In this document: positions 23,681-47,731 of the stretch, piece by piece
Layout of the letters: each line of letters starts with the position of its first letter
Position numbering within the stretch: the first letter of the stretch is position 1
NCBI RefSeq assembly: GCF_040938485.1
Contig: NW_027270892.1
Span: 1,922,001 to 1,986,000, forward strand
Direction of reading: 5' to 3'
Source: Diadema antillarum
Lineage: Eukaryota
DNA: 64,000 nt
Position numbers and translations under genes: made by a program
Notes under the pieces: model-generated
What the model saw: the letters and a program-made list of their open reading frames with translations, nothing else
Database searches by the model: none
Told to the model about the DNA's origin: nothing

Positions 23681-26600
23681 CTGCAAAGTAGTAGCAGGAA
23701 GAACAAATTAGCCACCAGTTACTAAAAAGTCTCTCTCTTTTAAACATATTATGTACAAATGATACTTTTTATCAAAAAAGTAAATCAAACATGTTTTTCG
23801 ATTGATTATCAGGGGCAAATTTGAAGAACAGTAAGTATCTGGATTCAGATGCTTTGGTTATTGACAAGTTTCTACGAAAATCACAGTGGGCATGCAATAT
23901 CAAGCACTGCCTTTTGTCCCTGAACATTGTAAGATGATGTTATTGTACATGGCAGGCATACATTGTATGAACACTGTGCTACACACAGCAGTGCAACAGA
24001 TTTCTTTGTTAATAAAAAGAAAATCAATCATGGGAGAATATGACTTTTTTTTTTTTTTTTTTTTTACAAGGAAGTTTGTATGATATCAGGAATTCATCTT
24101 TTGGTTTTAGTGTACATACTGATAAACTCACACTCATATTGTAAGGACATTATTTCAAGACAGCAGAATTTTGTGAATGATGTTCACATGCATAAAAATA
24201 CACACATTACATGTACACATACAATGTACATGTGTACACAAGCATGCACAAGTTTTGAAAATTACACTGTCACTATCAAGGAATTTATGAACATACATTA
24301 CTGTGTAAAAAAAAAAAATCTTGGCTAATTGTTCAATGAATGCTTTATTCTACCACATCTGCATTTGGGAATACCCTCTAATGAACATACAGTGCAGGGA
24401 TGCCAAGTTCAAAAACATTTTATGAGTGAGATTTTCATGACTTGGCATCTCGGCGCGCTAATGTGCGCATGAGAGAGGGTGTGGGAGGGCTTTTTCCCCC
24501 CTGTGGCCTCACACGGTAGGGAGCTTTCTCAATTTTAAGCTCTTAATGGTGTGATCAGGTGCATACTAAAAAGTGACTATTTTTTACTTATTTTGAAAGA
24601 CAAAAGGGAAATACACCTCCGATTGCAACTATCACTTTAATCTTTTGAGCTATGCTCATTATCATAGGCCCAAGTTGCAGACTTCGCCCGATGCGTGAGA
24701 AAAATGGGTGCCATGTGTGAGATTGTGAGATGGCACCTAAATGCTTGAGTCTCATGCAGAATGCGCGAGACTTGGTAGCTCTGACAGTGTAGTACAAGTC
24801 TGAGCACTCACAGATGTCACACTTTTTTAAGCAATCAGCATTTACAGTACTTAGCTTAAATCCTACTCCTTGTTTTTTTTTAAGCCTCTTTTAAAAACAA
24901 AATACATGTATCAGGGAATAGGGATACTGATTTCACGACATGTATATGTACTTAGGTACTATACAATGTAGGTACTTTGGTAGGTGGACCATGCAGCTCA
25001 GATGTATATTTTTGTTCACACAGAAACCCTCTTACACAGTACCTTTTAATGCATCTCAGAGAAATTGAAGAGAAAATTGAAGAGAAAGATGAGTGTGAAA
25101 CTGACAGGCATAACGTACTTTGTGACAAGATCCCTCTTTTGAAAACATGGGGAACATTACAATGCACATGTTCCTCATGTAGTATGCTGGTGACAGCAAT
25201 TTATGGTGACCAGCCCTAAACGAGTCTGACCTTACAAGAAATTACCTTAGATTCCACTATGAGTGAAATTAATTCACTGGCATGCAACGGTATTGAGACA
25301 CATCATAACAAGACATGATCTCAAAAAACAAAACAAAAACAAAAACAAAAACTGCTATTCTTGCGTGCAACAAGATATAATTTCAAAGTCCATCAAACTG
25401 CTTAAATTCATGTTGTGTAACACAGATGAAAATGGGAGGGAGAAGAATTCTTAAGCACCAAAGAATTTTTACTACAAAATGTATATACATTTGTATATCA
25501 AACAAGTTGGATATTACATGTACATGTACAATGTACATTGTAGGCCCTACAATATGTATATCTTATGCAAAAGCGCTGCCAATGCAGTATTACTGGACAT
25601 CAAACATACCTTCTGGAATACTGTCAGGAGAGCTAGGGGGAGGTGGACTTGGGGTGGGGGATGGGATGTTCAAAGCGGCCTGAATGGACTGAGGGGACGG
25701 CTGATCGATCTCGGGGTCTGGTGATTGTGGTTCCTCGGTGGGCAAAGCTCTTTCCTCCTGAGACGACTTCTCACTGTTGCCGTTCTTCCCGTCCATAACA
25801 GATATTCCATTTTCGGTCAGGAACTCGTCCAGGTCCATGTACTCTAGCTTGAGGTCGTCGTACGGTGTCTTTTCCCAGAGTGAGGGGCCGAGGAAGGCCG
25901 CTGCCATGTCTTCTGAGCAGTAGTCGAAGCTGTCGAGAAGGCCAGCCTCCTTGTCTTTCTTGCCATCTTTGTCCTTGCCTAAGACACAGGAAAGGAAAAA
26001 AAACATGAAAGAATACGGCTGAAAGTCTCTGTGTGAAGAACAATCATGATATGAAGTGGTCAAATTTTGTAAAAGCAAAGATGACTGTACAATGATACAG
26101 GCATTGTCATACAAAGGTAAATGTATTTCTTGGCATTGCACCCAGTACTATGGTACAGACTGCAGTATGAATTGTACCTGTGATGTACAAGTGATTAAAT
26201 TCCTGATTGTAAAGTACAGCACTGAACAGAGAAATCTACATGTATGTGTACATGTCATGCAGTTTTGAAGTTTGCAGTGCACTGAGCACTGTAGGTGGGA
26301 AGCTAGTACATCCTGATACATTGTATTCATTTTTGCTATAATACAAATTGTGTACACTATATTTCACATTTAGAATGGGCCTTATACATTGTACACTGTA
26401 AGTAACAGGGCATTTCAAAAGTAAAAGTGTACATGTACAATGTACATTTCACTATATAGGGATGTCAATTACAAAGATGATGTGTAATTTTCTGTTTCCA
26501 AGGTACTGTACATGTACAGTACATTGTACACCCCCATATGTTTTCTTTTAGAACAGTTTAATGTCATGAGACTGAGAGAAACAGATCTGTAACTTTGCCC

Positions 26601-29600
26601 AAAATTTTTGCAAAGAAGCAATTAGATTTTTCACGAAAATGAACAATTTGGGGTAACATTAATGATTATGCAATGCTAGACAGCCATCTACAAGTTGTGT
26701 TGACATGTATCATGTACATGTTACTATGATGGTCACTTTAAATAGAGAATGCTCTTTGAATAAAACATTGTTGTTTTTCAACTGAATGGCCTATTATTGA
26801 TTAGAAAAGATAACAGCTCTAAAATACCATTGAACATTGTGTTTCATACCCTTTACATGGCCAGCAAAACCGTGGGGGCCGTGGGGGCTTGGGCCCCCAC
26901 ATTTTTTGTGCACAATACAAAGAAATGCATAAGGTGTTATCACTTTGGGCCCCCACAATTTTTTTAACCCGGAAGTACGTAAGTGGCACTAAATAGAAAT
27001 AGAGATCTTGAAGTGTGAGCCCGGTACCTAGGTTATGTTTTTCCACTGAGGACCTCTTTGTGTGTGTGTGTTTTTTTTTTGCTTGTCAGCTGAACAGTGA
27101 AAAACCCAGAAATGGAAGGGGAGAGATGAGCTGAGCCGAGGACCTTTTTTTTTTTTTGCTTGTTACATTGTAGCTCATGAAACCCAGAAGTGGGCCCCCA
27201 CACTTTTGAAAACGCTGGGTTAAGCCTGCATGTACAAACATGTATAACTAGACAAAACTGACATACACAAGTGTGTAACCATTGCATACTTGCCAACATT
27301 TTGAAATCCTGAAGAGGTAGATTTTGCGAGGGAGCGAAGCGACCAAGCCCGAGCACGCTTGCGCGCGAGGGGGGGGGGTGTGGGAGGGGGGTGTCCCCCC
27401 TCCCGCGGTGTGGACTTTTTTTGTTTTTCAATATCAAAATATGAGATTTGGTGCACGCTTTTTAACCTTTTTAAAGGATTCTTGGTATTGATTAAAAAAA
27501 AGCATATAATCCATGTAAATCTATGAACTATTTTGTAGACTATGAAAATAAAATCAGACATATTGGTAAATAACTTTTGTAGGCTAAGCATATCAATGTG
27601 AAAAATCAAACATATCGTTATCACAAGTTAGATATAAAAATACATGTACGTTTAATACAATCACGTACAATGTACGTACACGGCCGGCCGGCTGGGATCA
27701 TGCCACGCCGTATGCCGCATCGGCCGCACCACGCACACGTGAGCTACCAAAACATTACTATTAAAGCATGGTTCTAGCTACACGTACAATGTACACGTGT
27801 ACAGTAAGTCTTGCACGCACGTAGATATGATAGACTAGTGCGCCACTGCAGTGTGCATACATGTGTGCATATTAGAAGGCTGAATACGGCGTTTTTGAGA
27901 AACGAGTTCCTTGAAATTATTATTAGTATTCTAATTACAATGTACTACAATTTTTGTAGCTTATTTTAGGGAATCAACGCACAATGAAGGGAAAATATGA
28001 CTTCTATTTCATTTTATGGTAGGTTTGCTACTAAATCGGTAGATTGGAAGAGAAAATCGGTAGCCGGTCAAAATCTCTAAAAAAGCGGTGGTCTACCGCC
28101 CAAAGCGGTAGAGTTGGCAAGTATGCCATTGAGTCAAGGGAATATTAAAGGTTCTACTGTTGAATGGCCCTCTACACCAAGTCTTAGACTTTATATGACA
28201 TCATCATACAAACATGTACATACAGTAGGTATTTTAAATTCAGGTGGTGTCTAGGTAATGATTTTCCTGGAACCGAGTGTAAGCCGATTGCCTGCAATGC
28301 ATTTTGTGATAGAGCCCTTACGCCACAGTAATTGCTAATTTGTAATTGTATTTGTATACTGACTATGACTTCTGCTTTACAAAATTTCATTTGCATATGG
28401 GTAGCCATACTGTCCTGTACTAGACTCCCGTTTGTTCAAGCATACATCATATACAATATAATTATGTTCGTCGACTACTGTATTTCCTCGCGTCGCTATG
28501 CTACATTGAATCATTTAATACTAAAACGCCGTATCTGAGGCTGGTTACTCAGTATGCAGTAGGCCTAGGCAGGACGCCGTGCGTGTATGATGCGATTGAC
28601 ACACAAGTGCGTGTGTATCTGTTATCATCAGCTACCCGCGCGCGCGGTTCCTAACTACACACACCTTCCTATACTGAGTACCCAAGGAGGTACAGTGTAC
28701 TTGCCTAGTACCTCCTTGCTATACCATTATCACATGTACACGTTTAGCGCTTCAGATCTTACGTACCGAGTGTTCTCACGTTGCTGGCAACGTGATTGAT
28801 CGCGACTCCGCATAGCGCATGCGTAAAATGCAGACACAATTTCTACGCAGTGTACAGTATCCAGTAGTACGAACGTACAATACACAATACGTATGGATCG
28901 GCATCATAAACAAGTAGGTTTGAAGCATGAGACCGGCCATGCCAAAGTACAGGTGCAGGTACGAGCGAGCGCGAGCACTTGTACTTGCAAACATAATTCA
29001 CACTTCCAATTCTGGCTGGTACAATTTATAACAGAACCAGGCACTACAATTAACATGCCCATATAGTAAGCAGAATCATCCCCTTCGCATAAATGCAGTG
29101 CACAGTTACACATGTATTTAATACTTGGCTTGATAATCGTAACAGTGCTGAATCGTAATCGTATCTCATCAAACTCCGATCATCAACTTGAATGGCGGTA
29201 ATATTTAATCAACACAGTAACAGTCGATCAGTCTACAGCTGTATGTAGATACGATTGAGCTCATTTGCTATTTGCTTCGCTCTCCTGCTCTTTACTTGGC
29301 ATTCACCTTACCAAAATTAGACTCGGATTAAAAAAAAAGGATAAAACAATTAATAAAGGTCCTATAGATCTATAACGTGAAACATTACTAAAAGGGAATT
29401 GAGAAGCTACTTAGTACTGTAGATCTACCGTCAAAACGACAAACGTTATAACTTTAATAGCGTGTTGGACCTCAACCACCCGTCGCTGTAAATTTATAGA
29501 AGTCGCCCAACAACTGTCCAATGACAATACGAAATGTCATCTCTAACGTTAGCCCGACCAGACACTGTTACGCTATGCGAAAACAGAGTCTGACGAGCGC

Positions 29601-31523
29601 GGCATGCAGCCTCAAAGTGAGGAACCTCAATACAACTACAAAACTTAGGAAAATGTATACTTTTCTTCTTTACACAGAATACTTTACTCACGTTAAATGC
29701 ATGTTTCTATTACAAAAGAACAGTTTGCCACACTGGGTCCATGGAGACAACTTGCGAATAGTCCGAGGAAAAAATAAATGACACTTTCTACCGCAAATCC
29801 TGACCATCTCAGGTTCGTCGTTGCAGGATTCAAAATGGCGCATTGACCTCTGCGAATTATGCGCATGCGTGACCGGAAGTGCTCCAGAGCGAGCGCGCGG
29901 CGTGTGCGTTGAAAGTGTCAAACAAACCTTGGCGTCTGCTACAAAATTAACCGTGGTATGGAGCTCAATGCTCCTCGCCCGACCAGACGCCAGCCGCCGT
30001 CGTCAAGCCCAGTACAGTTTATAGCTGTATAGTGTTGTACTAGTATTCTAAACCGTGCTTCGCATTGCGTCTGCATGGTGGTCGACAGCAGGATGACAGT
30101 CAGCAGTTACCATGCTCCATGCCATGCCCCACGCCGTGCAACTTTGCATTTCCTGTAAAAACGCGTTCACGCCGAAAAATGGTGGTTTTTACAGACATAG
30201 AGTGACAGCAGTAGCGTCCCCACGGACGTTTACTGCTGTCTATCGAAAGCCACATCATTATCATCGGAACGCTTTCATTTGCAGGTCATGCTACAAGTTC
30301 CTGATCCCTAAAACGCGCCCTGTGAAACCCGCGAAGGCAGGGAGCAAACGGGGTCATCGGAGGACATTGAAAACTCCAAACCCACATGGTGAGGATAAAT
30401 ATCACGGAATTCTACTAGACCCGTGTGTCAAAACATGACGTTAATTCCAGACCCTATATATAATTGTCATGACGCAACCATTATCCCAAAGGGCGCATTT
30501 GCATTTCCGTCAACTGTTTCGATGCACATTATATGAATGTTTTTTTGAAATAGAATGAAAACAAAACAAATCTTCCTTGCCGAAGATGTAGGCCCTATTG
30601 CAAAAATTAATGAGAACTCTATCAAAACATGGGTTCACGCTTTTTTCAACACTAATTCTACTCGTATAGGGGGTCGTGAGCTCTTACGTTATTTCGCTTA
30701 GATATGAGCGCATCTCATTTCACGTTGTATGTCGAACTACACTGTACTCTCATTCAAGACGGTGGTAACGTGGATATTTCGCCCCATGATGAGACGGAAG
30801 GGGAGCCATCCAGCACTCCGTCAGCAAAGCGGCAAGCATTGTTCCCCACACCGGGTCCGCTTCTCCGTTCCCAAGATCGCCAGATGAACCCGCTATGCCC
30901 CGTTGTGCCAGGTATACTCAATACCTTAATTATTCCAGTACTAAGACATACTAAAATTAAGACCAGCAAACACCACCCCCCCCCCACACACACACTAAAA
31001 TAATAATGATAAAAAACAATATATGTATATTTTATGTATATAAATCAAAACATCCACACAATGTACCAAGACCGTGTAGGGGGAGTGCTTGCGCCCATTT
31101 TTTTCCTTTTAATTTTGTTTAAACAAAAAAAAAGGGGGGCGCGCACGATGCCCCCCCCCCCCCATCCGCTACTGCTCAGAAACAGATTTTCTTTTCCCTT
31201 GTTTATAAGACACAGTTTAAGTTACATTTATGCAAGAGAATTAACGTTCTAAGTCATTGTTCTCAAGCCATTTGTTATGGGGAATTCAATAACAATCAAA
31301 ATCACTTCTTGTGTATGTAAAAAATACTCTCAGAAGATAAAGATGTAACAATAACAAATAGAAGAGGTGGTAATAGGGCCTATATTATGAAAGAATATAG
31401 CACCTACCATATCTGCAGTTAAAGGGAACGCAAACCCAAAGAGTGATGTGGATGGAGTGAAAGCAGCATTATTAGTAAAACACGTCAGTGAAAGTTTGAG
31501 GAAAATATAACAATCGATGCAAT

Positions 31524-31569
<46 letters not shown>

Positions 31570-31878
31570 GAGAGTATTAAGGAGGCGGTAGACGTTGCTT
31601 AATTGAATCCTCACAAGTGATTTTACTTCAAGCTTTCGGGCTTTCTGCCCTTTGTCAAGACTGAGGACAAATCGGACAAAATACAAAACATGGATATCAT
31701 ATATACAAACAATAATGATCAAAACAATAGTAAAAATAATGATAATAATATTTTTGTATATGTAAATATACAATACTGTATATACAGAAGCAACGTCTAC
31801 CGCCTCCTTACTCTCGTTACACACATTCCAAAAAGATGCGACGACCCAGGGGTTCAGTAGCTGAAGACGCACGTCTCA

Positions 31879-31917
<39 letters not shown>

Positions 31918-34900
31918 AGTTTTGGTGTTGGAACCGCTGTTTGAGGAGATAAGAAAAGGTTATGACGTATGAGTGGACAACAAAATACAGAACATAATGA
32001 AAAATATTCAACAAAAATTCCCTTTTTAAGTACTATGAAAGAGCACTCCACTATTTACGCTTTCAGAAAGCAGGAAGAATAATTAATACCCATAACATAT
32101 GTCAGTACAGCAAGTTGATGGAATTTCTAATTTGCATGAAAACAAAATTGTGGGATTTTCTTTTAATTTCCTTATTTTGTTGTCTACTCATACGCCATAA
32201 CCTCTAGTAGTCTCCTCATCCAGCTGTTCCAACAACAAAACTTCAAAATGTGTTACTTTTGCATCGATTGTAAGATTTTCTTCTGATGTGTTCTATAATG
32301 CTACTGCTTTCGCTCAATCCACGTTGCTCTTTGGGTTTGCGTTCCCTTGAGCCTACACTAATCTCGTCATCAATTAGATGCAGCCTAGATGTAATTACCA
32401 GAATTGTAGGCCTTAATTGACAAGCGGTAGAAGGGTATCTTGAATTTTCCCGACTCTCTTCTTTAATTTCATTTCATGTATTTTATTTATTTTTTTGGTG
32501 GGGTGGGGGCAAGTTTCACAAGATACCTGTATTCTTTAATATGGACTACACATAATGTGTTTGTTGTTGAGAGAGTGATGTTCGCCCTAAGAAATAACGA
32601 TAGAAAAATCCTAGGAATGGCATCATTTTGGTCTTCGCTAGTTTTGATTATAGTAGACTAAGCGCCCAACGAGATAACAACATCGAGCTGTATGGTGCCA
32701 TTGTCGTTATTTTTGTTCTTGAGCTGAGATTAGTCTCCATTTAGGCACATACGATTTCCATAGCCCAGATCATACTGGCTAAAAGCGACAGTGATGCTGA
32801 AGGTTTGACATTAATGCTATTTGTCATCGAAAAGTCCGTGGCGTATCTGCAAATATCCTCACCTGATTTCGATCTTATACAGACCAAAGAAAACAGACAG
32901 TTTTCAATTCTATTGTCTGATCTACTATTAGCTATACGAAAGAAGCATCATCTAGCATCAAAGCGCATCAAGGCTTAAATTCGATAACATGTATAAAGAT
33001 GTATTTAGACATGTATTAAAAGTAGAAACATTACAGAATCAATCTAGACAGCTTATTGAAAATCGTTGTGAACATGCATAACAAACGCCAATTATCAATT
33101 TCACAACAGATGGCGAAATTGCCCACGAGAACGTAGGTCCGCCGACTTCACCTACAGCTCTTCTTCAAAGAAAACAAAAAGATGCCGGCGTGCAGACAAA
33201 CTATCCGCCCTCATCATTTCTTCCACACGATGGAGAGCAGTCACTCAGCAGTGAACTGGACGATGATCTTCCTTGTCTACTACCTGAATGCACCGCCGGA
33301 CCAAAAACGCCGAAAGAGACGGCTATAGACTACATCGAAGTATCGAAGTATCGGCTTGCGTTTAGACTCTTATGTTTGAGTTACCCAGCGGCAAAGAAGG
33401 CACTGTCAACAGTGACGCAGGAAATTATAAAGGAAGAAGTAAGAGCACAAAATAAAAACAAAGTGCTACTGTATAGTCAAACAAATTTACATGCGTCTCA
33501 TTTTGATGAACATGCACAAGACAGCAATACTTATTCATTTTGCTCCAGTCGGCCATTTCTTTTCAGTCAAGAACATCCTTGTCATGGAAATTACATTCAT
33601 AATAATTGGAATTCTGTTTTACGTGAATTGGGTGATTACAAGATTGTAATGATTCTAACTTCGGTCATGTCATTATTTGGCTGCAATTTAGTGAAAATGG
33701 TACTTGCCCTGCCGTTTGTTTGTATTTATCAGGTTGGTTTTTTTTTTTTGGACATGTTTTATAGATGTGGTAGGTTCCTACGTGGATGTAGTTTGTCTTA
33801 AAAACAAATACTTCACTTAATAGTTGATATAATAAGTCAGTAGTTCACAATGGCAGCTCCCATTCAGTATGCTTTCCATATTTTCACCGACGTCAATTTG
33901 CTTCTTCTTTTTTATTCTACATAGGTGAAATCCATGAAGCGAAACAACCACAAAAAGAGTGGTTTCAGCCAGCCAATATCATTGGAACGGGTTGAAGAAT
34001 TCCGTTGGGAGAAACTCCTTGATGAAACGGAAAAGGTCATGCCGGTTGCCATTAGCTCCATGTCAGCCATGATGCCATCTATCAAAGAGGTCAAGGCAAA
34101 CAACGGAAAAATCAAAGGAAAGAAAGGCGCAAAGAGGTAAAGAAGAAACGATAGACAAATCATATAAACATGTAATTTAGTGTGGATAACAAATTTGTTA
34201 TTATTATTCGCAAGGTCAGTTTTAATTGCGTTAGCAAAATCATTATGTTTATGTATATTATTATATATTTGTGTGTGTGTGTGATAGGGAAAAAATGATT
34301 CTTGCATGGATATGCCAAAAAACCGCTTGCTCGAGATATAAAATTGCAAAGCACCTTCCAAATGAATTCGTTATAAAGTGGTGACACATTAAATGAATTA
34401 TTCAGAGTTTCAGAAGGCGCAATGAAGGATGAAAACTGTGACATGCCGTTTCATATTCTGCATTATCTCGATGCACATACAAATAGTTGTTATATTCGCA
34501 ACTTGCTGTTCTCTACTTTGCCCCTAACCAGAATTTTCAAGTAATTATACTCTTTTGCGAATTGATCGCCTCTTGTACATAGTTATTAGTAAACGAAATG
34601 TAAATTAGGGAAAAGAAAACAATAAGGATATAAACAGAATGGGGTGCAATATGAATATTATTTAATGAGAACTTGAAATGCGCGGACGTGAGTCCCCAAA
34701 GCGCAGTGCAAAAAAAAATATATATATATAAAAAAAAATAACTTCAAAATTTCGAATCTTCACATTCATGCATAAGAAATAAACAATAGGAGGAACAAAA
34801 TAACTTTTGTTTATCCACCAAGGTGTGTTTCTGACGATGAAGCCAAGGTATTCATTACTCGACGACTGGGTCAAATGGTAGCAATCGGAATGTTCTCGCA

Positions 34901-37900
34901 GGCACCACGCATATTCAAGTTTGTGCAGACATGCATGGGCATCGAGCTATGGCGGCAAGGAGTGTCCCAGAAGGTGTTCAAGACACTGAATCATAGTGGT
35001 ATCACCATCAACGCAAATACCGTGAGGTTACACGTGGATGTTGTCGCGCAAAATCATGACCAGCAGCTGAAAGAGTGGAAGAAGACGGTCGAGGTGATGC
35101 GCTCGTGTGTTCCATTATTTTACACTCTTGTTTCTAATTTAGACCCAATTGTTTTACAGCTAATGTTAAACCAGGGAAGTTGAAAGGTAACGTTGAGAAT
35201 GCACTCAGGAATCCCATAGGAAATACTGAACAAATAGCAACGTACATCTACCTCAATTCTTGGAACTTTGGACTACAAGTACTACTAAAAGGGGCCCAAA
35301 AAATAATAACGTAGAATACTAGAATGAAAAGTTTGGTATTGATCAAAATTACCATCCTTAGTGGATAGATAATGATATATTACGCTCTGCCTATATTTTC
35401 CCCGTTGTATTTTACCAGTTGCATGTTGAAAATATTGTTATTGCGTGTTTCAAGACCTCCTGTCCATGCGTTACGTGATCCACTGACTCAACTCATGCAC
35501 ATACATGGTATTTGTTAATTTACTCCACAAAAGAAAAGTGAAAAAAAGGGGAAAAAAATGTATTACTTTTAATTGGCAAAATATCCCTCCACACAGGAAT
35601 TGCCAACGAAGACAACTCGCCGGAAGCTAAAATTCAGTCCTTCTGCTCCAACGTTTGGGCTGTGCATTGATAACGTGCAGAAGGGAACAGAATCAAAGCA
35701 CCAAGGACTGACACGGGGTAACAAGTTCTTCCTGCAAACCATGTGCTATGCGGCCAAAGACAGGGTGCCACCTCCGATGTCTTCATCCACAGTGCTGGAT
35801 GCCGAAACCCTGGACCCCTTTGTGTTCTTGCCCTCTCCGGACGTCATGGCCAGGCACCGAATGCGCCTAGTGGATGTAGTGGCCAGCATCATGGGGAAGC
35901 ATATGACGTACTTGGAGGATTTATCACGCCACCTCCCCATCACCCAAGAGCATGAAGAGAGTGCCGCTATGTCGAAAAAGTCTGAAATGGTAAGGGAATT
36001 TGTGGAGGCCCAAGCTCCATCGATATGATTGTTGATATCAATAAATTGAGAAAATTTCCATAAGTTATTAATCAAGGTTTCAATATTGGTTAAAAGAAGA
36101 ATCAAAACATAGCTTTCTGGCATACATTAAAAGACAAGCTATTCCTCGATTTAAACAGTAGGACGGCGTGCCCCTCAACCACAATAAGAAAATTGTCCGA
36201 AGATAAATTTAAACTGTCAATTCACTTTTAAAATTGAAAAATTATATGACAATACTTTGAGGGGACTCATATATTTGCCATTCGGGTAATGTAAACGTCA
36301 ATTTTATCCCTGTCCTAGGTGACATTGGGTGTTGTAAACGCTAATCCCAGCACAACACAAGGGATGGTAACAGTGTTACAGCATCTGCAGCAGTATGTTC
36401 CCGAGAAGAGGGGAAGCCCCATTCAGACCCTCGTCAGCGGCGACGGATTGACCATCGAGCGCATCCTACATGCTCAGCGGGCGAGATCGAATGGAGAGAA
36501 CTGGAAGGCCCGACTGGATGCATTCACTCCGGCACCCCAGGAATTTCACAAGGAAATTCTACTTCTGCAGGTATGTCTAACTCTCGTGAAATAAAAGCTA
36601 TGAAAGAATAGACACGAACAACTGATTAATTTCACCATGTTATTTATTATCTTCGCTCCATCCAAGCGAAGAATGATTACGTAAAGCCTGCATTGTACTG
36701 ATAGTGTACAAAGTTGTTTGGCCTATGTTTGTTTTGACACATTATGATCAAAATGTTATTGGTACTACAAAAGCTGCTTCATAACAATGTTTTCTGAAAT
36801 TTTTCTTTCGAATCAAAATATAGACGTTACCATAAGAACTGCTTCCCACATTATTGATAGACAGATATTTCGTGTCAGGTCCATTACAAGTAATACTCCG
36901 ATCTACGTTACACAACTTTGATATCATCAGTTTGTCTGTACTATGTGACATTTCCCAGAGACAATCGAGAAAGGACGAATGAATAATACCGAGAACAATT
37001 ATGTCTGTTCTTTAACGAACACCGGCCACGCGTTGATACAGCTACGAAGCATGATACACAAACAGATGTTAAAGTCATTATATAGTTTTGGTAGAGAACT
37101 AACTTCAAGTTTCTAACATTTTTTTGGGCGACAAAATGCGAAGCAAATTTTGGAATATAAAAGAGCATGTAATTCCAAGAGAATTTACGTGTTTTTTCAT
37201 GAAAATTGGTCATTATATGACTGAGTCACCACAAACAGCAATCCTAATAAAAGGTGGGATGGCTTTGTTCTACGTTGTTTTTGGATGTCTCAGCCATTCC
37301 AAAACAGATTTTGATCGAATGAACTTTCAATTCCTCTTAGACGTAGATATACTCTGTACTCTTTCGTGAAGTGCATGATTTCTCGATATCTCGCAAAAAG
37401 GTGAAAGCCCAATCCTCAGTTCCACCAATATGCCAAACCATCCCTTAACAGAGTGACTGTTTCTGCTAACTAATTATTCAAAAGAACCTATCATTTCAAC
37501 ATAATTTCCTCCTTGTCAAGGACTCAAACAACGTCTTCTTTCGAGGGAAAAGCATTTCTGCCAAAGGGACAATCGCACAGTTGAAGTACGATTACAACCA
37601 CAACTCTTTCCGGAAAGACGTTATGCAAAATGTTCAGCATACCTGGGATATGTATGAGGTAAGACGTTTCATAATTAGCAATTTTAGAGTGGAATGTAGG
37701 GATGACAAGACAGGGATAGGTCACAACCTGTATCTATAGTGTGTAATAGAGGGTGACAGTGTATTTTTGCTCTAATTTCAAAGAAAATGAAACATAATGA
37801 AATGGATGCAACGGAATTTATATAGTATACTCAGTATAGTAAAGCGAGATTAATGATGCATAGGGCAGAAAATGGGGAATCACAAATTTAATGAATGGTA

Positions 37901-40900
37901 GCATCATATTGCATTGTGAATGCATGATATACGCGTAAAGTATATTCATTCTTGTGCCAATTTTCGTGCTGAACAGTTCGTGACAGAGGGATACACGCTC
38001 CTTTGCGCCCTTAAGTTCTGTGGAACATCGTCTCTAAATGAGGTCCCTTACACTTTTCCGGTTGACGGCAGCAAAATGGAACAGCTACAGTGGGTCAAGG
38101 GTGTGGCTCAACAAGTCGTGGACTTCGTCTACCATGAACCAGACAAGTCATCAATACAAGTTGCAGCAGAGGCGTACAAAGATGACGTGGGAGAAGAAAC
38201 AGAGGATGCTCTGGCGTACTGTCACTGTAAAACTGGTTAGTACCCTATGGCAGTACTCCTACTATAAATCACTTCCCCACCATGATTTAAGGTTTGCTTG
38301 TTTTGTCATGTAACGTTAAGTTATCATTCAGAATAAGGATAAACAACCCCCCGCCCCCCCCAAAAAAAAAAACAACAACAACAAACAAACAAACAAACGA
38401 ACTGGTTAGTACCCTATGGCAGTACTCCTACTATAAATCACTTCCCCACCATGATTCAAGGTTTGCTTGTTTTGTCATGTAACGTTAAGTTATTCAGAAT
38501 AAGGATAAACAACCCCCCGCCCCCCCCAAAAAAAAACAAAACAAAACAAAACAAAAACAAAACAAAACCAAAAACAAACGAACGAACAAGCAAACAAAAC
38601 AAAACAAAATTGAAAAAAAGAAAAAAATTCCATGGCGACCGCAATACATCCACTACATATTTATTTATTTATTTATTTATTTGTTTATTCATTCATTTTT
38701 GTACAATACACACTGCCATTGCCACAGGAAGGCGACAATCTCAAATGAACGGCAAATAAACAATATCCGGTACACTATGATATTGTACACAGATTTTCGT
38801 GACATTGTTGAGCGGCATAATATGGAAACAGACAAATCTAATTACATGTATTCTCACTTGACCGTTCTGACTGCATGTATATGATCCCAAACTTTCCATG
38901 TATAATCGCTGAGTGGTAATGCATGTATGAATTCCAAGTCCAACAGGACTGATAAGCGTATATATTCATTTTTTTTTTCAGTATATGGAATAGCGTCACC
39001 CGAGCATAAGCTAATCCAATTTCGATACTTTGTTAACATTGACGTAAGGGCTCAAAACTGCTCTTAGATACATGAACGGTACATTCAGGTACCGCATTGT
39101 AGGCATAAAGCGGAAAAATGAGAGGAAACAAGTAAATGTGCTCAGGAGTGTACTCTTAGTGTAAATATTTCGATTGAACCGCAGTTTGCATAGTTTACAG
39201 AAAAATTCATGTATAATTCCGGAATAAGAACATACATGTACTTTGAAACTTACATCATATCGACATAGAAAATCTGGTAATTGTTCATGTTTCTAATCTT
39301 CTCGCCGATTTTGATTATGTGACATGTGCATGAATCCTTTCTCAATTATCTGTGTAGAGAAAGACGAGGAGATGGTTCAGTGCTGCAGTTATGCATGCCA
39401 CAAAGCCTGGTTTCATCTGGGTTGTGTCGGATTAGCATCTGCTCCAGATGACGACTGGTACTGCAGCGCCGATTGTGAAAGCAGTCCAAGCTACGTCTAC
39501 TGTGTGTGTAAGCTGAAAGTTGATCCAGAAGGCGGTACAAGAATGGTACAGTGTGCTTTGCAGCGGAATTGCAAGGGTCATGAATGGTATCACTACAGAT
39601 GCGTTGGGCTCCAGGTCACCGATGTACTACCGGGTGAGAAGAATTATGTTCGTGCATAATAAATGTGGAGATCTATGGACGGTGCCAACGATTTATTTAC
39701 AAGCATGAGCTGTTTGTCTTGCGAACTGAATCAGGTAGAAAAATTCTCTCATTACAGCTTATTATCAAATATGCGATAAGTATTCAAGGATGGTGTTGTA
39801 ACACGCTTGATCTAGTACCCATTAAGGCCTATGGAAAAAGGTAAATACTATGTCATTTCACTGTTTCCTGAGACGTGATTTTTTATTACTGTAGACAAAT
39901 GGTACTGTGGAGAAGCATGTGCCCTTGACTCTGAAGACGACGACCATGTGCTGAATCACAGTAAGGCTATCACTCTGGAGGGACTGCGTCATCAGGCAAG
40001 ACGAGCTGCAGTGCGGGCTGGAAATGGACCCGTCATGGTTGACGACTGGAAAATTGATCTCCTATCGTTCTGGTCAAAGAGGCATCCGAAATACCTCATC
40101 AACGCCCACTACTTCCTGGCATGTGAGTCTAGCACAATGTTTCTGTAATAATATAATACAGACAGACATATATTTGAGATATTCAATCACCAGAGGAAAT
40201 AACAGTTCATTTCGGAGAAACTACAGGCCGAGTCTCTCGAGCAGAGATTGTTTTTGGAAAATGCAGATGACTGTCAAAGAGTATTTCAATCAGATTTTAA
40301 TATCTAGAATTTCATTCATTTTTTTTATATCTATTCCAGGTGTAGGAGGATTTGCTCCCCAAAACACACGGACTAGCTTGATCTGGAATAGGGTGATCAA
40401 CGTTGCTGGAAGACGTGGAGGAAACATTGGAATGGACCTTGCCACTGAGCACATCAACTTGGAGTACAAAGGTATTACGTGGTAGATGTGGGAAAATATG
40501 TGAAAATATGTGTGATTAATAATGTGTAATTATTTTTCTACCGATAGTGATACGCGATCTTTCACCATGGAGACGGTACTGTGAGCTGCGTGCATGATTT
40601 CGAATCAAATAGGTTAGTGAGAAGAGTCGTCTTGCCGGTATCGGTCATTTTTGCAAAAGCATGCCCGATTCTGAAACGATCCTTTCCTATCCTTTTCACC
40701 TTCCGCTCCCCGGCAACTGATGAAGAGGGCGGTGTTTTGGGACTAACCTGTCTTTCAATTTCAGTTTTGTTTTGTTTTTGTTTTGTTTTGCTAACTCCTG
40801 ACGGGGTGTCGCCGTTTATTTTGGCCAATGTTTTGGTATTTCATTTATATATAATTATATATATATATATATATATATATACAAACACTATATAATATGA

Positions 40901-43900
40901 ACATATTTATTCATTAATTTATGCATGTATTTCATATTCACCTTTTTTTTTGCAGAGACGATAAACCATTGTCGTGGAAATGTGACAGAGAGGCATGCCG
41001 ACCGATGTGCCAAGATGTCTGGCCCTTTCGGTCGGTACCTGGACGATATGTTCAGTGACGCCGGGATCGTGTCTATGAAAACCCCATCACGAAAAAGGGC
41101 AGAAAACCTGTACAAGCAGGACGTGCTGTCATTCGTCAGTGAGAATCAGCGAGCTGCGCTATTTGAGTACTTGCCCTTCAGAGAACACGATGGTTTCGAG
41201 GGTTTTGATGGCAGACATGTTGTGAAAGCCCCGTGTAAGCTTGGACAGAAGTTGAAGGCCCTTTCCAGAAGAATGGATGCACAACGCCGAACTGTACAAT
41301 TGTGTCGGAATACAGACTCTCACTAGGAAAGACCATGTTAGTGATTCACGGTGTCACAAACTGAGCAGCAGGGACCCACTTGCTCTCTCGTCTGCTCCAT
41401 GCCTGGTACAAACAATGCTTTTAATACAGACTGCCGGATGCAGCATGACAATTTGAGGATGTCGCTCATCTCATCATCAAGCCATCTCTTGTTGACGGAG
41501 CCTGGTGGAAGGTACATGATTGCTCTCCCCCGTCTTCCGTCACGGCCACAGCGTCCCGTCTCCTGCCAGTAACTAAGGACGTCGCTTGGCGGTCCCCAGT
41601 GAATGACAGTGTCCACATCCGGAACATCCACTCCAAGCCCGAAGGCAATGGTTGCGATCACGCAACGAAGTGTAGAGCCCTTGGAAGAAAAGTTCATGCT
41701 TATTCTTTCCTGACTGTCTATGTCCGTGGACGCATGAAACATTTCAGAGAGTCTGTTGTGCACAGTACATGGCTGTTCAGAACCTGTAGAGTGTCCATCT
41801 TTCTGCAGTGATTCATTGATCCAGAGATAAAGTTCACTGACGTGGTCGATATGTCTGTAGGAACAAAACAAAATGATGCCATGTGTCAACATTAAAGCAA
41901 TCTATTTTCTTCACATTTTCTAATTATCTTTTCAAACATAAATTATTGGTTATGAAGAAAATCTAATTTTAAGAAGAAACTGATTTTTCTTTCAAAGTTG
42001 ATTTTCAAAAGATGTAGGGCCTCAGGTGTAGGTCTTCATGCATTACGGTTCTCGTTTGCTTTATAGAAATTGTGGGTACCATATTAATGTATTTTCTGTT
42101 TATCCAAGGTAATGTGCCAAGTATACATGTATATTGGGTATTGGTATGGTCTTCATAATTTAGTTGACGTCGATAAAACGTTTAAAAACTATTTCGGCAC
42201 TCATCTTTAAACACCGCGCCACCAGAATTGATAAGTCATGCAAACAAAAATCGAAGGCTCGATTTTTAGTTTACTTACCGAGCATATATGATGGTTTTCC
42301 GGGCCCTGGTTCCTTTTTGCTTCAGTTCCTCGATGTACCATCCTAGAGCCTCTTGCTTATTGGGGACTCGAGCTATTTCTAGGTGAATGTTTGGCCTGCA
42401 ATATTTGATAAATGGTATATTTATGAGATGTAATATAGGTGTTCGTGAAACAAGTCTGAAGAAAATCATATTTCATAATTACTGTGATTTACAGCGTAAT
42501 TGACTGGCATTCAAATGTATCTATCGGAATCAAATCTCCCTTCAAGTTTACCAGGCCGAGTTCTTGCAGTGGTAAGTTTTCTCCCTTTAAAGTAAATTAT
42601 AATTTATATCAATATAAGTTATAGCTCATAGGAAAACGGGTTGTAATTTACTCTAAACCCAGATCTGGATCATGAGAACGAATGATGACTCCTTTTCATA
42701 TCAGGGAAAATATAATCGACCGGGCGAAAAAGAATTACATATAGCTTGTAGGCCTACATGTATTCGGATACATGAATTTCACAAACTACATAAAGACGGA
42801 AATAAATATTTGGAGAAATGAGTCGTTGTTTGTAGCTTACGGTATTAAAGGGAAGTAGTTGGCTAACAATTTAGAGCCGCGTGATAAAAACACACCGTGT
42901 GCATGTGTTCCCGCTTCAAAAACAACAATACATTGCATTAGGCACAACTGAGCCCACATGTTTTCCTTATGTATTACACAGGCGGCGGTATATGATAGGT
43001 GGGAGAAACCTTTCTTTTACCAGTTACTACGTTGGTCGTGCAGGTTTTATATGCTCCACGGGACATGTGTCGCTGACGTTCAACTTCAGTTATCTGTCTT
43101 AACATCGTGTTCGTGATGAGTGTTATCTGTGCACCGAAAACATTACATTATCATAGCTATAGTGTATCCACTACCAGTAGTAGGAGGATTTTGTTGTGCA
43201 CATACGTTTGTGATTACGTCACCTGCAAGTATACAGCCATGGCGAAAGAAAAAATAAATGGGGTATAAAATGCGGAAGTTCCACGTGTTGTTTTTTTCTA
43301 AAATCCGTGTCATCGCGCATTGAATTGTTGTTGCTGTTGTGTTTTTGTTTGCGTCTCAAAACCACCGTCTGATGACCACAGATGATTTAGTCATAGGTGA
43401 AAGTTGACATATTGGTATAAGCACAGCAGAAATAAGAATCGTTCATCTTGCGCATAACTCTTTAGCTGATTTTAGCGGGTATATGTCTTGAAGAGGAGAA
43501 GCGAGCAAAAGCCTTATACATGAAAGAGAAATATCGGCTGGTATTAATGCGATCGAAGTATCGGGAAAAGGGGAGGCGTCTGTCCACTTGAGGGCTATGA
43601 GCGGAGTAATTTACATGTTATATTTTTGGGACACTGATACATTTCATTTCAATGGATATAGTAGTGTTTCAAACTGACATTCGATGCCTCACATGCATGT
43701 GACTTGATCCCTGAGAACGAAAAAAAAAAGTATTAAAGGATTTTTTTTTTACTTCTGTTCATTACCAATAGATTTATGACATTCCGCGGATGTAACTAGT
43801 ATGAATGAATGAGGCGTCGATGTTAATAAATACCTGTCTGGAGATAAAGCGACGATTTTCACTTCCTCTCGTCGGAGACTCAGATTTTCGCACACAGCAG

Positions 43901-45903
43901 TAACCATTCTGTCAGTGCATGTAGCGGACAGCATTAAGACAGGGCATGTTAGTCTTGATCGCAAAGTATGAACTCTCAGGTACTCCTCTCTGAATGTCAA
44001 TCCCCTGCACATACACGACAGTTAGTCATAGATAGGAAGAACAGTACAATAACAATATTTTACTTCCGTTAAGAAAAAAGAAAGAAAGAAAGATTATGTC
44101 CGTATACAAGACAGAATGTAAACGGGTCTGATGATTTATCGCGTGTTTATTTCTGTAATGACTGTAGTGTGTACATGCAGTTACAACAAACATATAGTTA
44201 TAATCAAAAATCCGGCGATCAGTTAAATGTCCTAGCCATTTATCAATCAGAGCGCTAATAGTACAGAATATGTTCTATATAATTCTTTCATGTAGTATGC
44301 GTAGTTCCTTGCTTAGTTTGGTCACTATAGGCCCATCCTGTGCAAAATTCTAATGTCAAACATCTAGCAAGAAGTGAATCTCAGAAAGCATAACTACAGT
44401 TCCCTCTCACGTGCGCTTGTTTGAAATTTTGATATGCTATAAGGTCATCATCTAACAAAAAAATAAAAAAATAAACAGTTGCATGTTCGACCTCCCCTAT
44501 ATCAAATCAAATTTTAGCTAAATAATAACTATTTCGACATTCGCTACCCCAAAATCACCCAAAGAACGTGGATAGAAAACTTTCCTTTAAATCAGGGCAC
44601 GGTATACAGCCGATAGTTCTTCGGCAGCTGCGTGTTTTAATTATCTAGTCGTCCATATTCTGATTAGGGCCTGTCCCGACATGTCCATGTCCGGATAGGA
44701 GAGGTCGGACTGTATATTCTTCAATCTTTTACCTCAGCTGAAAATATGGAAATACTTTATTTCAGTTTAAATTGGGGTGTCTAGGACTCAGGCATTATGT
44801 TCCCATAACATCGCAAAACCATCTCATTTGATTCATTATACATGTATCTGCAATAAGTATGTTCATCGAGTACGTTCAATTATGGTACAGTTTGAAAAAT
44901 TAATCCAGTTAAGTTGTCAGCAGTTTTATGTATAACATTGCACTTTGGAAGGTATAACGTATAAACTTGCCATTTTGTCAGACAGTGAACTTCGTCAAGT
45001 ACAAGCAAGCAAATCCTTTCTTGGAACTTCCGCACCCATTTCCACCATTTCGGTGACATGATGGCCTCTGGGGACGTGAAAATGAGATCTCTCTCTCCGT
45101 TCATTAGATCTGATGGGTATATAAAGCGAGAAGTTGAAAGTAGAACATAATTCAAACATGCTAATCTACCATCAACTTATATCCCGATTTAGTGCTCATT
45201 AAGAAACGATTATCTTTATAACGTACACTGTATAATGGATACATAACGATTTCAACATTGATATTACGTGTTTTCACTTTCAAAACATATCGATAGATTT
45301 TTCTAACCCGAACTGATATCTAGTTGCTGATTATGATCATTCTATACGAGAGACAGTTTGATTCACCTATCCATTGCGGAGACTAAAGGCTGATTCCGGA
45401 TTAAACTTGTTCGACAAGAGTACAACTGTTTTGTACAGGCATTACGGGAAGAAGCGAGATACTCTTTGTGTGTATATCATACATGGGAAAGGGGGGGGGG
45501 ACAAAGGGTGCAAATTGTCAACAATTATTAGAAAATCGAGAGCAGACTGGGATCAATGAATTTGTTCAAGAACACAGGAAACTTCCGGTAGTTTTCTGAA
45601 TTACCATTTTCTGTCAACCGGTCCATATCCATCCCGGAATGACCGAGAATGGCCGCAGTTCTTATTCCATGTGACTCCCACCTTCGCATCTGATCCATCA
45701 TTAGACTTTTTAGCGGACTGACCACGAGGGTCATGTGTCTTGTCTCTGGATTCAACTGTCAAAAAAAGAAAAAAAAATCTACAATGAGCGACAATGACAT
45801 TGAGATACTGTGACTTTTCATATTGCTGTTATATTTCTATACATTAAAAGTAATGTTAAAATATATAGGCCTATATGTCCATATGACTCGTTATAGGGAT
45901 AAA

Positions 45904-45951
<48 letters not shown>

Positions 45952-46672
45952 GCACCTAGTAGTACAAACTGTTTTCTACTTTATACCTCCCATACACAGC
46001 TCCTTTCCACAGCGGTCCTTCCTAGGATTTATCGAACCAGTCACATTGTCACTTTCATAATGCTTATCTTCTTTTTTCCCCTCTATGATAAATATACGCT
46101 TGATTATATATAATTCTATGGGATTTTTCTCAATACGAATTAAAAGGGGGATCAGCACACAAATAGATTGATAAGTTTGTATCATCATTCAAATTAGCAT
46201 GCCATAAAAATTTATATCATAATGTATAATAGGTCTATTAATGTAATGAATGAATTATGTTGCCACTGTAGTGAATTAAGGTTTTGTAGGTAGGCCCTTT
46301 GGGCTTGTCAGATATTCAAGACCTAAAGACCTTTCCCTTATTCATTCATCCGTATTTCAGTAATTCAATGAGGAAATAATGATAACCAATAATCATCGAC
46401 TGCGAGAGCGCGAGGTGTTTATCAAGCCGAGCCGCAACTTGCCAAAGGCTGATAGACACCTCAAGGATCACCGATCGAGGTTATGTTAGATTTTATCCAT
46501 TACCCGAGAAATAGATGATTATTTGCTTTATATCCAACATCGATTTACAAAGTCGAACGAGATATGATTAAAGAAAAATATTCCATCAACCGTGCGGAAT
46601 ATGTCTACAACTCAGGCATGACAGGTTGCACCGTAAAACCACGGCAATCTGATAAATTAGAGTAGCGTCAAT

Positions 46673-46706
<34 letters not shown>

Positions 46707-47731
46707 AGAGTACACACAAAAAAAACAACAACGACAAATAAACAAAACAACACCTGCCTTGTCCATGAGTGGCCCAAAGAGAACGTACGGGATACTTTTC
46801 CCGTATGCGGTAGGCAAAATGGCCAAGGTGTGACTTCCTCCTGCCAGACTGTCGATTATCTCCACTTGTTTTGTTTTGAGTACGAAACTTTCACCGAACA
46901 TTTCGGTCGCTACTTTACGAATACAAGACTGATTATCCATGTCTAAAATGAGAAGAGTATGTGAGAAGTATACACAAAGGACGCAGGACAAGATGAAGAA
47001 GAAGAAGAAGAAGAAGAAGACAAGGGACCGGAGTGGACAGGTGTACGTGTACGCTTGAGAACGTATTACACAACCTATGGTATGACGTAAGTACTGCCTA
47101 ACGTCGTCTGCTTGTGGAGAGATCTTATGCGTGCGTGCGCGGCTTGAGTGTAGCAGCACGGTCGGCAGCGCGACCTTTTGAAAGGGCATTCACATCACGT
47201 GACCACCCGATATCTGAATTTGGCCTGGCGTGAAAGATTGTGTACCGTGTGGACATGCTGGATATGATGATCAATTTCGGTAAGTTTCATTACGTACATT
47301 TGAATACTGATAGCATCAGATGTAGAGTAAATATTGAAGAGTGTACTCGATGAGTTTGAGGTGACAAAAATGATCGTAAGTATCAAAAGTCAAAGCTATC
47401 GTGATACGATTACGTCGCTCTCCTAGTGGTTGGTGGTCGCACTCGTACAGCCCTGTCGCGACGTACCATGTACAGCGACTGGGCTGTGTATAGTTACTCT
47501 AACGTTAACATTTATTTGTCTGGAACTTGTCTATTCCGACAATTTATTGGTCAAGGTGGTTGAAACAGAAGAAGGCACTTAGATTGCCGATTTTTTTTTC
47601 TTCGTCTCACCTTTTTTCGAATCATTGTTGCCCGATGGAGGCTGCAGAAAACTCGGATTTTCCAGTAACGATTTTAGGGTTATCCCACGAATGTCGCTCA
47701 AGCGCTCTTCCATTCCCTCCATTAGATCCAT
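23244..47731 (-). CDS. HLF: PAR-bZIP transcription factor (HLF/TEF/DBP/Pdp1 family), 308 aa; join(complement 47611-47731, 25610-25978, 23244-23680)
   Basis: Exon 1 reads [28 protein letters not shown] (PAR-family TLxxLLENP-like motif) with donor G|GTGAGA. Exon 2 has [32 protein letters not shown]. Exon 3 has the PAR + basic + zipper region [54 protein letters not shown]. All introns are GT-AG and phase 1/1; total 927 nt with TAG stop. The symbol stands for the single invertebrate family member. Confidence 0.93.
24395..24783. mobile_element. Non-autonomous element with 6-bp TSD (IS3EU-like), in HLF intron 2
   Basis: CAGGGATGCCAAGT / ACTTGGTAGCTCTG with ACAGTG on both sides. Confidence 0.7.
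25610..25978 (-). CDS. HLF: PAR-bZIP coding exon 2
   Basis: Acceptor TCTTAG|GC and donor G|GTATGT; contains the conserved [10 protein letters not shown]...[10 protein letters not shown] block. Confidence 0.93.
26856..27229. mobile_element. Diverged copy of the 599-1147 MITE family, in HLF intron 1
   Basis: Shares GGGCCCCCACA..TTTTTTAACCCGGAAGTACGTAAGTGGCACTAAA..GAGATCTTGAAGT and the right-end CACTTTTGAAAACGCTG; TSD not recognisable. Confidence 0.7.
27285..28125. mobile_element. Non-autonomous element with 13-bp TIR and 6-bp TSD (IS3EU-like), in HLF intron 1
   Basis: CATACTTGCCAAC / GTTGGCAAGTATG with CCATTG on both sides. Confidence 0.78.
29975..30109 (+). mobile_element. 135-bp diverged Academ-type miniature nested at the transposase start codon
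   Basis: Starts TCGCCCGACCAGACGC and ends CAGTTA; flanks CAATGCTCC / CCATGCTCC (8/9). The last 25 nt match the big element's right end at 14/25 positions without gaps. Confidence 0.6.
30112..41326 (+). CDS. Academ transposase with two PHD fingers, ~1115 aa; join(30112-30388, 30702-30911, 33110-33438, 33925-34136, 34823-35093, 35597-35989, 36319-36570, 37521-37658, 37977-38235, 39358-39633, 39895-40122, 40340-40471, 40956-41326)
   Basis: All 12 introns are GT-AG with matching phases; 3348 nt, no internal stop. N-terminal CxxC...CxxC. Putative catalytic motifs CIDNV (exon 6), SGDGLTIER (exon 7) and DLATEHIN (exon 12). PHD1 [30 protein letters not shown]; PHD2 [28 protein letters not shown]. 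The first two exons are least certain (alternative ATG 30124, alternative acceptor 30759). Confidence 0.85.
31423..32347. mobile_element. Kolobok-like non-autonomous element in transposase intron 2, carrying a nested MITE
   Basis: TTAA|AGGGAACGCAAACCCAAAGAG ... CTCTTTGGGTTTGCGTTCCCT|TGAG; same family as 62276-62827. Confidence 0.7.
31567..31818. mobile_element. MITE with ~33-bp TIRs nested in the Kolobok-like copy
   Basis: AACGAGAGTATTAAGGAGGCGGTAGACGTTGCTT / AAGCAACGTCTACCGCCTCCTTACTCTCGTT; next to a (TA)n run. Confidence 0.7.
38231..38560. repeat. 169-bp tandem duplication starting at the exon 9 donor of the transposase gene
   Basis: AACTGGTTAGTACCCTATGGCAGTACTCC... occurs at 38231 and 38400. 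Confidence 0.85.
41338..46940 (-). CDS. RecQ-like superfamily-2 DNA helicase of the AcademH element, 425 aa; join(complement 46758-46940, 45605-45755, 44971-45109, 43834-44004, 42279-42395, 41338-41854); possible extra upstream coding exon 47075-47189
   Basis: Motifs I LPTAYGKS, Ia [69 protein letters not shown], and a C-terminal Cys cluster (CCSVC). 1278 nt uninterrupted when two GC-AG introns are used. Confidence 0.9.
46388..46522. mobile_element. Small palindromic repeat in a helicase intron (10-bp terminal IR plus internal hairpin); family unassigned
   Basis: AATAATCATC / GATGATTATT ends; internal GAGGTGTTTATCAAGCC ... GGCTGATAGACACCTC. Confidence 0.45.
47611..47731 (-). CDS. HLF: PAR-bZIP coding exon 1 (40 codons + 1 nt)
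   Basis: ATG at 47731-47729 with an in-frame upstream stop; [10 protein letters not shown] motif; phase-1 donor matches the phase-1 acceptor at 25979-25980. Confidence 0.88.

Follow-up and report, generated by a model that had tools for sequence, protein, structure and literature searches.

A heterozygous Academ-type transposon in a Diadema antillarum PAR-bZIP gene places a helicase gene in potential splicing phase with host exon 1

Results

The host gene and its first exon

We analysed a 64,000-nt stretch of Diadema antillarum DNA (RefSeq assembly GCF_040938485.1, contig NW_027270892.1, positions 1,922,001 to 1,986,000 of the forward strand; hereafter the window), in which the first intron of a PAR-bZIP gene contains an Academ-type DNA transposon, and asked how the co-oriented helicase gene of this element relates to exon 1 of the host gene. 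All coordinates are window positions. Both the host gene and the helicase are read on the minus strand, which was followed directly from 48000 to 45400. Splice sites were scored with a generic weight matrix, and the scores serve as a ranking device only. The features of the host gene are as follows.

47611 to 47731, minus: exon 1, coding part, 121 nt (40 codons plus 1 nt, phase 1)
47605 to 47610, minus: intron-1 donor GTGAGA, context AAG/GTGAGA (score 6.7, 99.8th percentile of the GT sites on the strand)
25610 to 25978, minus: exon 2, the usual partner of exon 1, with acceptor ...CTGTGTCTTAG/GC (score 8.8, 99.85th percentile on the strand)
23244 to 23680, minus: exon 3, with the bZIP domain and stop codon (Pfam bZIP_2, E=1e-15)

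Direct reading and a script agreed on the start ATG at 47731 and the final exon-1 base at 47611, which confirms the phase-1 donor reported for exon 1 by the initial annotation, a sequence-only reading of the window. The coding sequence consists of 121 + 369 + 437 nt (47731–47611, 25978–25610, and 23680–23244). The bZIP_2 domain was found by Pfam within the open reading frame (ORF) 23244–23747. A word search with the exon-2 ORF returned the 308-aa RefSeq protein 'thyrotroph embryonic factor-like [Diadema antillarum]' (P0001, XP_071487267.1 and XP_071508642.1), whose N-terminus is identical to exons 1 and 2 joined at 47611/25978, with the junction reading ...SKK-G-KDKDG; P0001 carries this canonical junction on both haplotypes. 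Conservation of the N-terminal exon extends to Lytechinus pictus and to two further transcript-derived proteins of echinoids (P0002, P0004, and P0005). A C-terminal bZIP with an adjacent PAR region, the conserved N-terminal exon, and the RefSeq name all identify a PAR-bZIP gene, for which 'HLF', used by the initial annotation, and 'TEF-like' are two names. A literature search on sea urchin HLF and circadian expression turned up nothing relevant.

An Academ-type element occupies intron 1 on one haplotype

The element and its immediate surroundings comprise the following features.

29552 to 47496: Academ-type DNA transposon, 17,945 bp, lying 103–114 nt into host intron 1, delimited by the exact gap in the L001/L002 alignment and carrying helicase and DUF6589 transposase genes
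47497 to 47507: target-site duplication, exon-1-side copy, TAACGTTAGAG in gene sense, found once in the empty haplotype L002 and twice here
29541 to 29551: target-site duplication, distal copy, 11 identical bases
30704 to 41326, plus: transposase gene, coding span, 1022 aa with DUF6589 and PHD fingers, convergent with the helicase and antisense to the host gene

Exact look-up of P0001 led to two contigs in assembly GCA_040938485.1: L001, which is the window's own contig, and L002. In L001, the host coding sequence spans 24,488 bp and nests the 425-aa helicase gene on the same strand and the 1022-aa DUF6589 gene on the opposite strand, while in L002 it spans 8,581 bp with no nested gene. The flanks of the two contigs are 96–99% identical and are interrupted by one clean gap of 17,945 bp, corresponding to window positions 29552–47496; a masked run of N at 48240–48454 makes up the 215 differences counted between the window and L001. 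The 11 bases TAACGTTAGAG are single in L002 and stand on both flanks of the element in L001. The orthologue in D. setosum (P0265) spans 7,647 bp, has no nested gene, and retains the unbroken site ...AACGTTAGAG.... The assembly keeps both haplotypes of one highly heterozygous individual, with 1.75 Gb assembled for a haploid size of ~703 Mb and 84% duplicated BUSCOs (PMC13511894). Because the site is empty in both L002 and D. setosum and both haplotypes are retained in the assembly, the sequences indicate that the Academ insertion is derived, recent, and heterozygous in the sequenced animal, which bears out the word 'allele' in the initial annotation. A fusion retained by selection would be fixed and conserved across species, and neither the second haplotype nor D. 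setosum has this insertion.

The host 927-nt coding sequence is identical between the haplotypes, and the surrounding introns differ by 1–4%. The only nearby haplotype differences that look transcribed are at 47959, 47939, and 23126, together with an indel near 23054. A separate 2,070-bp insertion, absent from the window haplotype and with ends lacking an obvious inverted repeat, lies in intron 1 of L002 (L002:13426-15495), at a point equivalent to about window position 26342, 364 nt upstream of host exon 2.

The 1022-aa product has a precomputed PF20231 match, and one of its exons gives a weak direct match, as expected of an Academ-type transposase. The pairing of a helicase gene with a convergent DUF6589 gene recurs in Patiria miniata, Glandiceps talaboti, and Ptychodera flava. 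When other copies of the element's 5′ region were sought within the window, only terminal matches of ~20 nt to a small derivative near 55150–55234 were obtained. The coding regions of the helicase and the transposase end 11 nt apart on opposite strands (window 40815–41338), and their 3′ ends must overlap as antisense RNA, since the transposase's last coding exon contains the poly(A) signals of the helicase. The host pre-mRNA is likewise antisense to the entire transposase gene.

The helicase gene is a complete transposon gene with its own start

Six coding exons and two poly(A) signals make up the helicase gene.

46758 to 46940, minus: exon 1, 61 aa, RecQ motif I region, ending at the GC donor AAG/GCAGGT
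45605 to 45755, minus: exon 2 (homology-guided boundaries)
44971 to 45109, minus: exon 3, with the DEVH motif, ending at the GC donor ATG/GCAAGT
43834 to 44004, minus: exon 4, with the SAT motif (homology-guided boundaries)
42279 to 42395, minus: exon 5 (homology-guided boundaries)
41338 to 41854, minus: exon 6, with the stop codon and Helicase_C domain (homology-guided boundaries and Pfam)
40815 to 40911, minus: two AATAAA signals, 427 and 518 nt past the stop, within the final coding exon of the transposase gene on the other strand

Pfam recognised pieces of the DEAD and Helicase_C domains among these exons, and a search of a representative library with the last exon returned many relatives, the closest 64% identical and the full-length ones 411–457 aa long. 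The exon boundaries were set by tblastn of three full-length relatives against the region. The exons were then aligned as separate rows with the relatives (alignment A1), A1 was used for a word search, and the joins were made in scripts to check frame and identity. The word search returned 'ATP-dependent helicase wrn-1-like [Diadema antillarum]' (P0157, XP_071500236.1, 425 aa), and the translation of the six-exon model equals this protein exactly. Introns 1 and 3, two of the five, use GC donors (46756–46757 and 44969–44970, minus), and the 425-aa RefSeq protein is obtained only with them. Exact look-up of the last-exon ORF gave no match.

P0157 matches DEAD at 1e-19 and Helicase_C at 6e-14, and exon 1 aligns with E. 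coli RecQ from residue 11; together these identify a RecQ-like SF2 helicase. In A1, its N-terminal start is shared by the relatives, which come from a sea star, a scallop, and two acorn worms and have no host extension. As the relatives start at the same N-terminus and E. coli RecQ aligns from residue 11, the helicase needs no upstream coding exon, and the ATG at 46940 is, on this comparison, the family-typical start. The 90% cluster of P0157 has one member on one contig, so there is no second Diadema copy to compare.

Host exon 1 can be joined in frame to the helicase

As the initial annotation noted, the helicase and the host gene are co-oriented, both lying on the minus strand; the element is thus a DNA transposon inside a host gene with an ORF on the host strand. 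The following sites bear on a possible junction between the two genes.

46943 to 46944, minus: candidate 3′ splice-site AG, 2 nt before the helicase ATG (score 1.0, 94.5th percentile)
46945 to 47053, minus: 109-nt AG-free tract upstream of the candidate acceptor, 79% pyrimidine, with a (TTC)n run and a CTCAC branch-point-like motif
47226, minus: cryptic AG (score 1.3)
47074, minus: TAG/GTTGTG, the 'own donor' of the element in the initial annotation (score -4.6, the median of all GT sites)

The candidate acceptor reads ...CTCATTTTAG, in the wider context ...CTTCTCACATACTCTTCTCATTTTAG, with the AG at 46944–46943. The predicted exon starts with AC at 46942–46941, followed by the helicase ATG at 46940, and 668 nt would be skipped between the exon-1 donor and this acceptor. 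When 47731–47611 was joined by script to 46942 onward, the product began MDLMEG... and read ...SKK-D-MDNQ... across the junction, in frame and with no stop, the last base of exon 1 and the AC forming an Asp codon (G+AC). Recomputation reproduced the position of the acceptor, its distance of 668 nt, and the reading frame given by the initial annotation, and its potential product, a 41-aa HLF N-terminus followed by the 425-aa helicase, was obtained without a stop and with the helicase part equal to XP_071500236.1. We also agree with its estimate that a match of phase has a prior of about 1 in 3. As the phase match alone is a 1-in-3 event, the in-frame arrangement is not beyond chance. A word search with a 173-aa ORF spanning the acceptor region gave no match.

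The sequence from the candidate acceptor through helicase exon 1, together with exon 2, is 336 nt long (window 45605–46942, minus). A transcript running from host exon 1 through helicase exons 1 and 2 to host exon 2 would, on this count, keep the host frame and the bZIP domain with a 112-aa insert, another 1-in-3 coincidence.

The candidate acceptor is moderate in strength

The host exon-1 donor (47610, score 6.7) and the exon-2 acceptor on the 25978 side (score 8.8) both rank near the top of their strand. The candidate acceptor at 46944, which the initial annotation had called strong, scores 1.0 compared to 8.8 for the exon-2 acceptor and lies at the 94.5th percentile of the AG sites of the strand, so that it is better described as moderate. 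The five annotated helicase acceptors score 9.4, 1.3, 0.8, 0.3, and 6.6, and since three of them fall at 0.3–1.3, the candidate is within the working range of the gene's own acceptors. AG-free gaps as long as 109 nt are found in 26 of 3,368 cases on the strand (top 0.8%), and the CTCAC branch-point-like motif lies ~20 nt upstream of the AG. The candidate is therefore a moderate acceptor, competent-looking and clearly weaker than its distal competitor, yet transcribed ~21 kb earlier.

Splicing into the cryptic AG at 47226 would meet a stop after ten codons. Position 47074 was indeed weaker than the HLF donor, as the initial annotation held (-4.6 against 6.7), but with a score at the median of GT sites it is a poor site, and we rejected it as the element's own donor. 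Better internal donors are ATG/GTACGT at 47466, 30 nt inside the element, and AAT/GTACGT at 47297.

Within 668 nt, the 5′ leader of the element contains a perfect E-box CACGTG and three ACGTAA/TTACGT half-sites (47196–47201, 47410–47415, 47290–47295, and 47085–47090, minus), against ~0.55 per kb window-wide, and has no full PAR D-box. The E-box and half-sites could be promoter elements or transposase-binding repeats.

Related elements and recorded transcripts

The candidate found no support as a conserved native acceptor of a 5′-UTR (untranslated region) intron in this element family, as the elements of Patiria, Glandiceps, and Ptychodera are without one: in the 120 nt upstream of the helicase ATG at these loci, there is no acceptor-like AG beside the start codon. 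The leader of Ptychodera flava (L006:9880-10000) is likewise pyrimidine-rich and ends ...CATTTTAAACT-ATG with no AG; its end, CATTTTAAACT, resembles the Diadema CATTTTAGAC minus the AG. Because a single Diadema copy is available and related species lack the site, the acceptor cannot be shown to be ancestral, and it may be a chance AG ending a T-rich leader. Just ahead of the helicase ATG, separated from it by 2 nt, the element has an AG preceded by a long pyrimidine tract; this AG is moderate in score and not conserved in related elements.

The NCBI annotation of the assembly drew on 12 RNA-seq runs (PMC13511894), and RefSeq models two separate genes at the locus and no fusion. The longest host product of the insertion haplotype is 308 aa and not 466 aa, in a look-up that records only the longest product of each gene, and the 466-aa fusion protein was not found in the protein collection. 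Of the 120 best matches listed by a profile search covering 226–719 aa, just two came from D. antillarum, namely P0157 and a 230-aa fragment. No Logan (run-assembly) source was obtained for P0001 or P0157, and the public transcript assemblies hold neither full mRNA. The absent fusion model, the unextended relatives, and the lack of an acceptor in the family lean mildly against an abundant fusion.

Discussion

What this analysis adds is the allele status, the exact limits of the element, and the exact helicase gene model. The structural preconditions of a gene trap are all present at the locus: a sense gene, a near-consensus donor, a usable-looking acceptor, a matching phase, and poly(A) signals. 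The account we prefer, in which we place middling confidence, is that of a recent heterozygous Academ insertion with the potential for in-frame splicing between host and helicase, and with chimeric transcripts as a minor by-product at most. An autonomous 17.9-kb Academ transposon of the helicase type would have landed in intron 1 of a single-copy PAR-bZIP gene, where it is still heterozygous, and its helicase would be an ordinary transposon gene with a family-typical start, co-oriented with the host by chance. The pyrimidine-rich leader ends in an AG 2 nt before the helicase ATG, and with host transcription passing through the element, this AG is in principle available as a partner for the strong exon-1 donor. 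Splicing between them would yield an in-frame mRNA that encodes 40 residues of the host, an Asp, and the whole helicase, and that ends at the helicase poly(A) signals. The main products of the insertion allele would probably be the normal exon 1–exon 2 mRNA and, for an active element, a helicase mRNA with its own transcription start; we infer that chimeric transcripts are a minor by-product at most, 'minor' being a judgement. Whether chimeric junction reads would be detectable in carriers we regard as an even question, while it is improbable that the chimeric junction is the major product of the insertion allele.

Several considerations weigh against this account. Transcription reaches the proximal acceptor ~21 kb ahead of the canonical one, and a real exon with a functioning donor behind that acceptor, combined with its early transcription, could give efficient trapping. 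The splice-site ranking does not use a sea urchin model. Furthermore, the lack of a fusion model carries little weight, because the animals behind the RNA-seq runs may be without the insertion or the sampled tissues may express the host gene lowly. An efficient trap, in which most exon-1 transcripts of the insertion allele join 46942 and terminate at the helicase poly(A) signals, would put the helicase, extended by 41 aa of host leader, under control of the host promoter and make the allele a strong bZIP hypomorph. The near-consensus host donor and an acceptor just 668 nt away, with its 109-nt AG-free pyrimidine tract and branch-point-like motif, are consistent with such a trap, as is a downstream exon defined by a donor used in the annotated helicase model; with poly(A) signals past the stop, nonsense-mediated decay is not expected, the parts are laid out as in an engineered trap cassette and, as in known fusions, with the acceptor ahead of the ORF, and a young heterozygous insertion leaves little time for selection to purge a harmful allele. 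However, the acceptor is far below the canonical one (1.0 vs 8.8), the GC donor at the end of helicase exon 1 implies weaker exon definition, RefSeq has no fusion model, and the acceptor is not conserved in related elements, and we consider an efficient trap unlikely. It is still less probable, and in our view a long shot, that the reference animal holds a fusion caught at birth, with the promoter and exon 1 of the host, a clock-output gene, driving HLF(1-40)::RecQ-like helicase on one haplotype, and that the helicase of this Academ lineage may routinely trap host first exons near gene starts instead of using its own promoter.

The opposite possibility is that there is no chimeric splicing: the AG would be the end of a T-rich untranslated leader, the element would be silent or removed with the intron, and the phase would be coincidental. 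The 1-in-3 prior of the phase match agrees with this, as do the pyrimidine-rich Ptychodera leader that reaches ...CATTTTAAACT-ATG without an AG, the lack of an acceptor-like site in Patiria and Glandiceps, and the lack of any recorded fusion model or protein; the equally scoring cryptic AG at 47226 indicates that sites of such quality are common. Nevertheless, three helicase introns use acceptors of like quality, the AG-free tract is of unusual length, and chimeric transcripts are documented from intronic transposon genes that lie in sense orientation and have such sites. A complete absence of chimeric splicing is therefore a tenable but rather doubtful explanation. Returning to the recent insertion with occasional in-frame splicing at most, the locus is a real, well-placed set-up for the known route of transposon capture by splicing at its earliest stage, and its operation is put forward here as a hypothesis. 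The proposal of the initial annotation that the allele could bring the helicase under HLF promoter control and lower normal HLF is likewise a reasonable hypothesis.

If the junction is used, the complete helicase gains 41 residues without a recognised domain, and host transcripts are truncated before the bZIP exons. The fusion mRNA would not be an obvious target of nonsense-mediated decay, since the helicase stop is in the last exon and two AATAAA signals follow at +427 and +518 nt. The locus would then offer a rare view of the first step in transposon capture, still polymorphic and with the empty allele in the same animal as an internal control, in which a helicase is captured instead of a transposase domain. 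The allele would, moreover, be a naturally occurring partial loss of function in a keystone reef urchin, affecting its sole PAR-bZIP gene. Should the junction not occur, the locus is simply a young transposon insertion in an intron, of an ordinary kind.

Comparison with known systems

The element resembles AcademH in combining a DUF6589-type transposase with a RecQ-like SF2 helicase in a long element. For AcademH target sites, a duplication of 9–10 bp is given (Kojima 2020, Mob DNA 11:15, as cited in PMC10045372). The 11 identical bases seen here are close to this range and could reflect a 10-bp duplication with one further base matching by chance.

The locus shares with engineered gene-trap cassettes the order of acceptor, ORF, and poly(A) signals, a position in a 5′ intron, and the sense orientation. 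Unlike in such cassettes, the natural acceptor is moderate, and the ORF is split by five introns, two of them with GC donors.

A model from Pinctada imbricata (KAK3101271.1, P0118; L008:10001-41771, VSWD01000005.1) is similar in that host exons are joined to exons of a helicase of the same family, followed by convergent DUF6589/PHD genes. This 631-aa model combines a sulfotransferase domain with a partial helicase; it differs from the Diadema locus in being a submitter annotation that is possibly merged, with a helicase part that lacks the N-terminal third. It could be a host–Academ chimera or a merged annotation, and it is a lead, not proof, that such chimeras form.

Vertebrate host–transposase fusion genes are described as arising by insertion into a host gene, followed by alternative splicing via a transposon-borne site and then by selection (Cosby et al., bioRxiv 10.1101/2020.05.07.082677). 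In KRABINER, SETMAR, and PGBD3-CSB, as in Diadema, a DNA transposon lies in an intron in sense orientation, with an acceptor (in Diadema a candidate one) just upstream of its ORF and with host sequence upstream that could be joined in frame. In contrast to the fusions of Cosby et al., the ORF open to capture here is an accessory RecQ-like helicase and not a transposase DNA-binding domain, the host part is 40 residues with no recognised domain, the insertion is still polymorphic and has no counterpart in the sister species, and the fusion is a predicted one. The Diadema locus shows the first step of this path to a fusion gene and has the sequence arrangement for the second.

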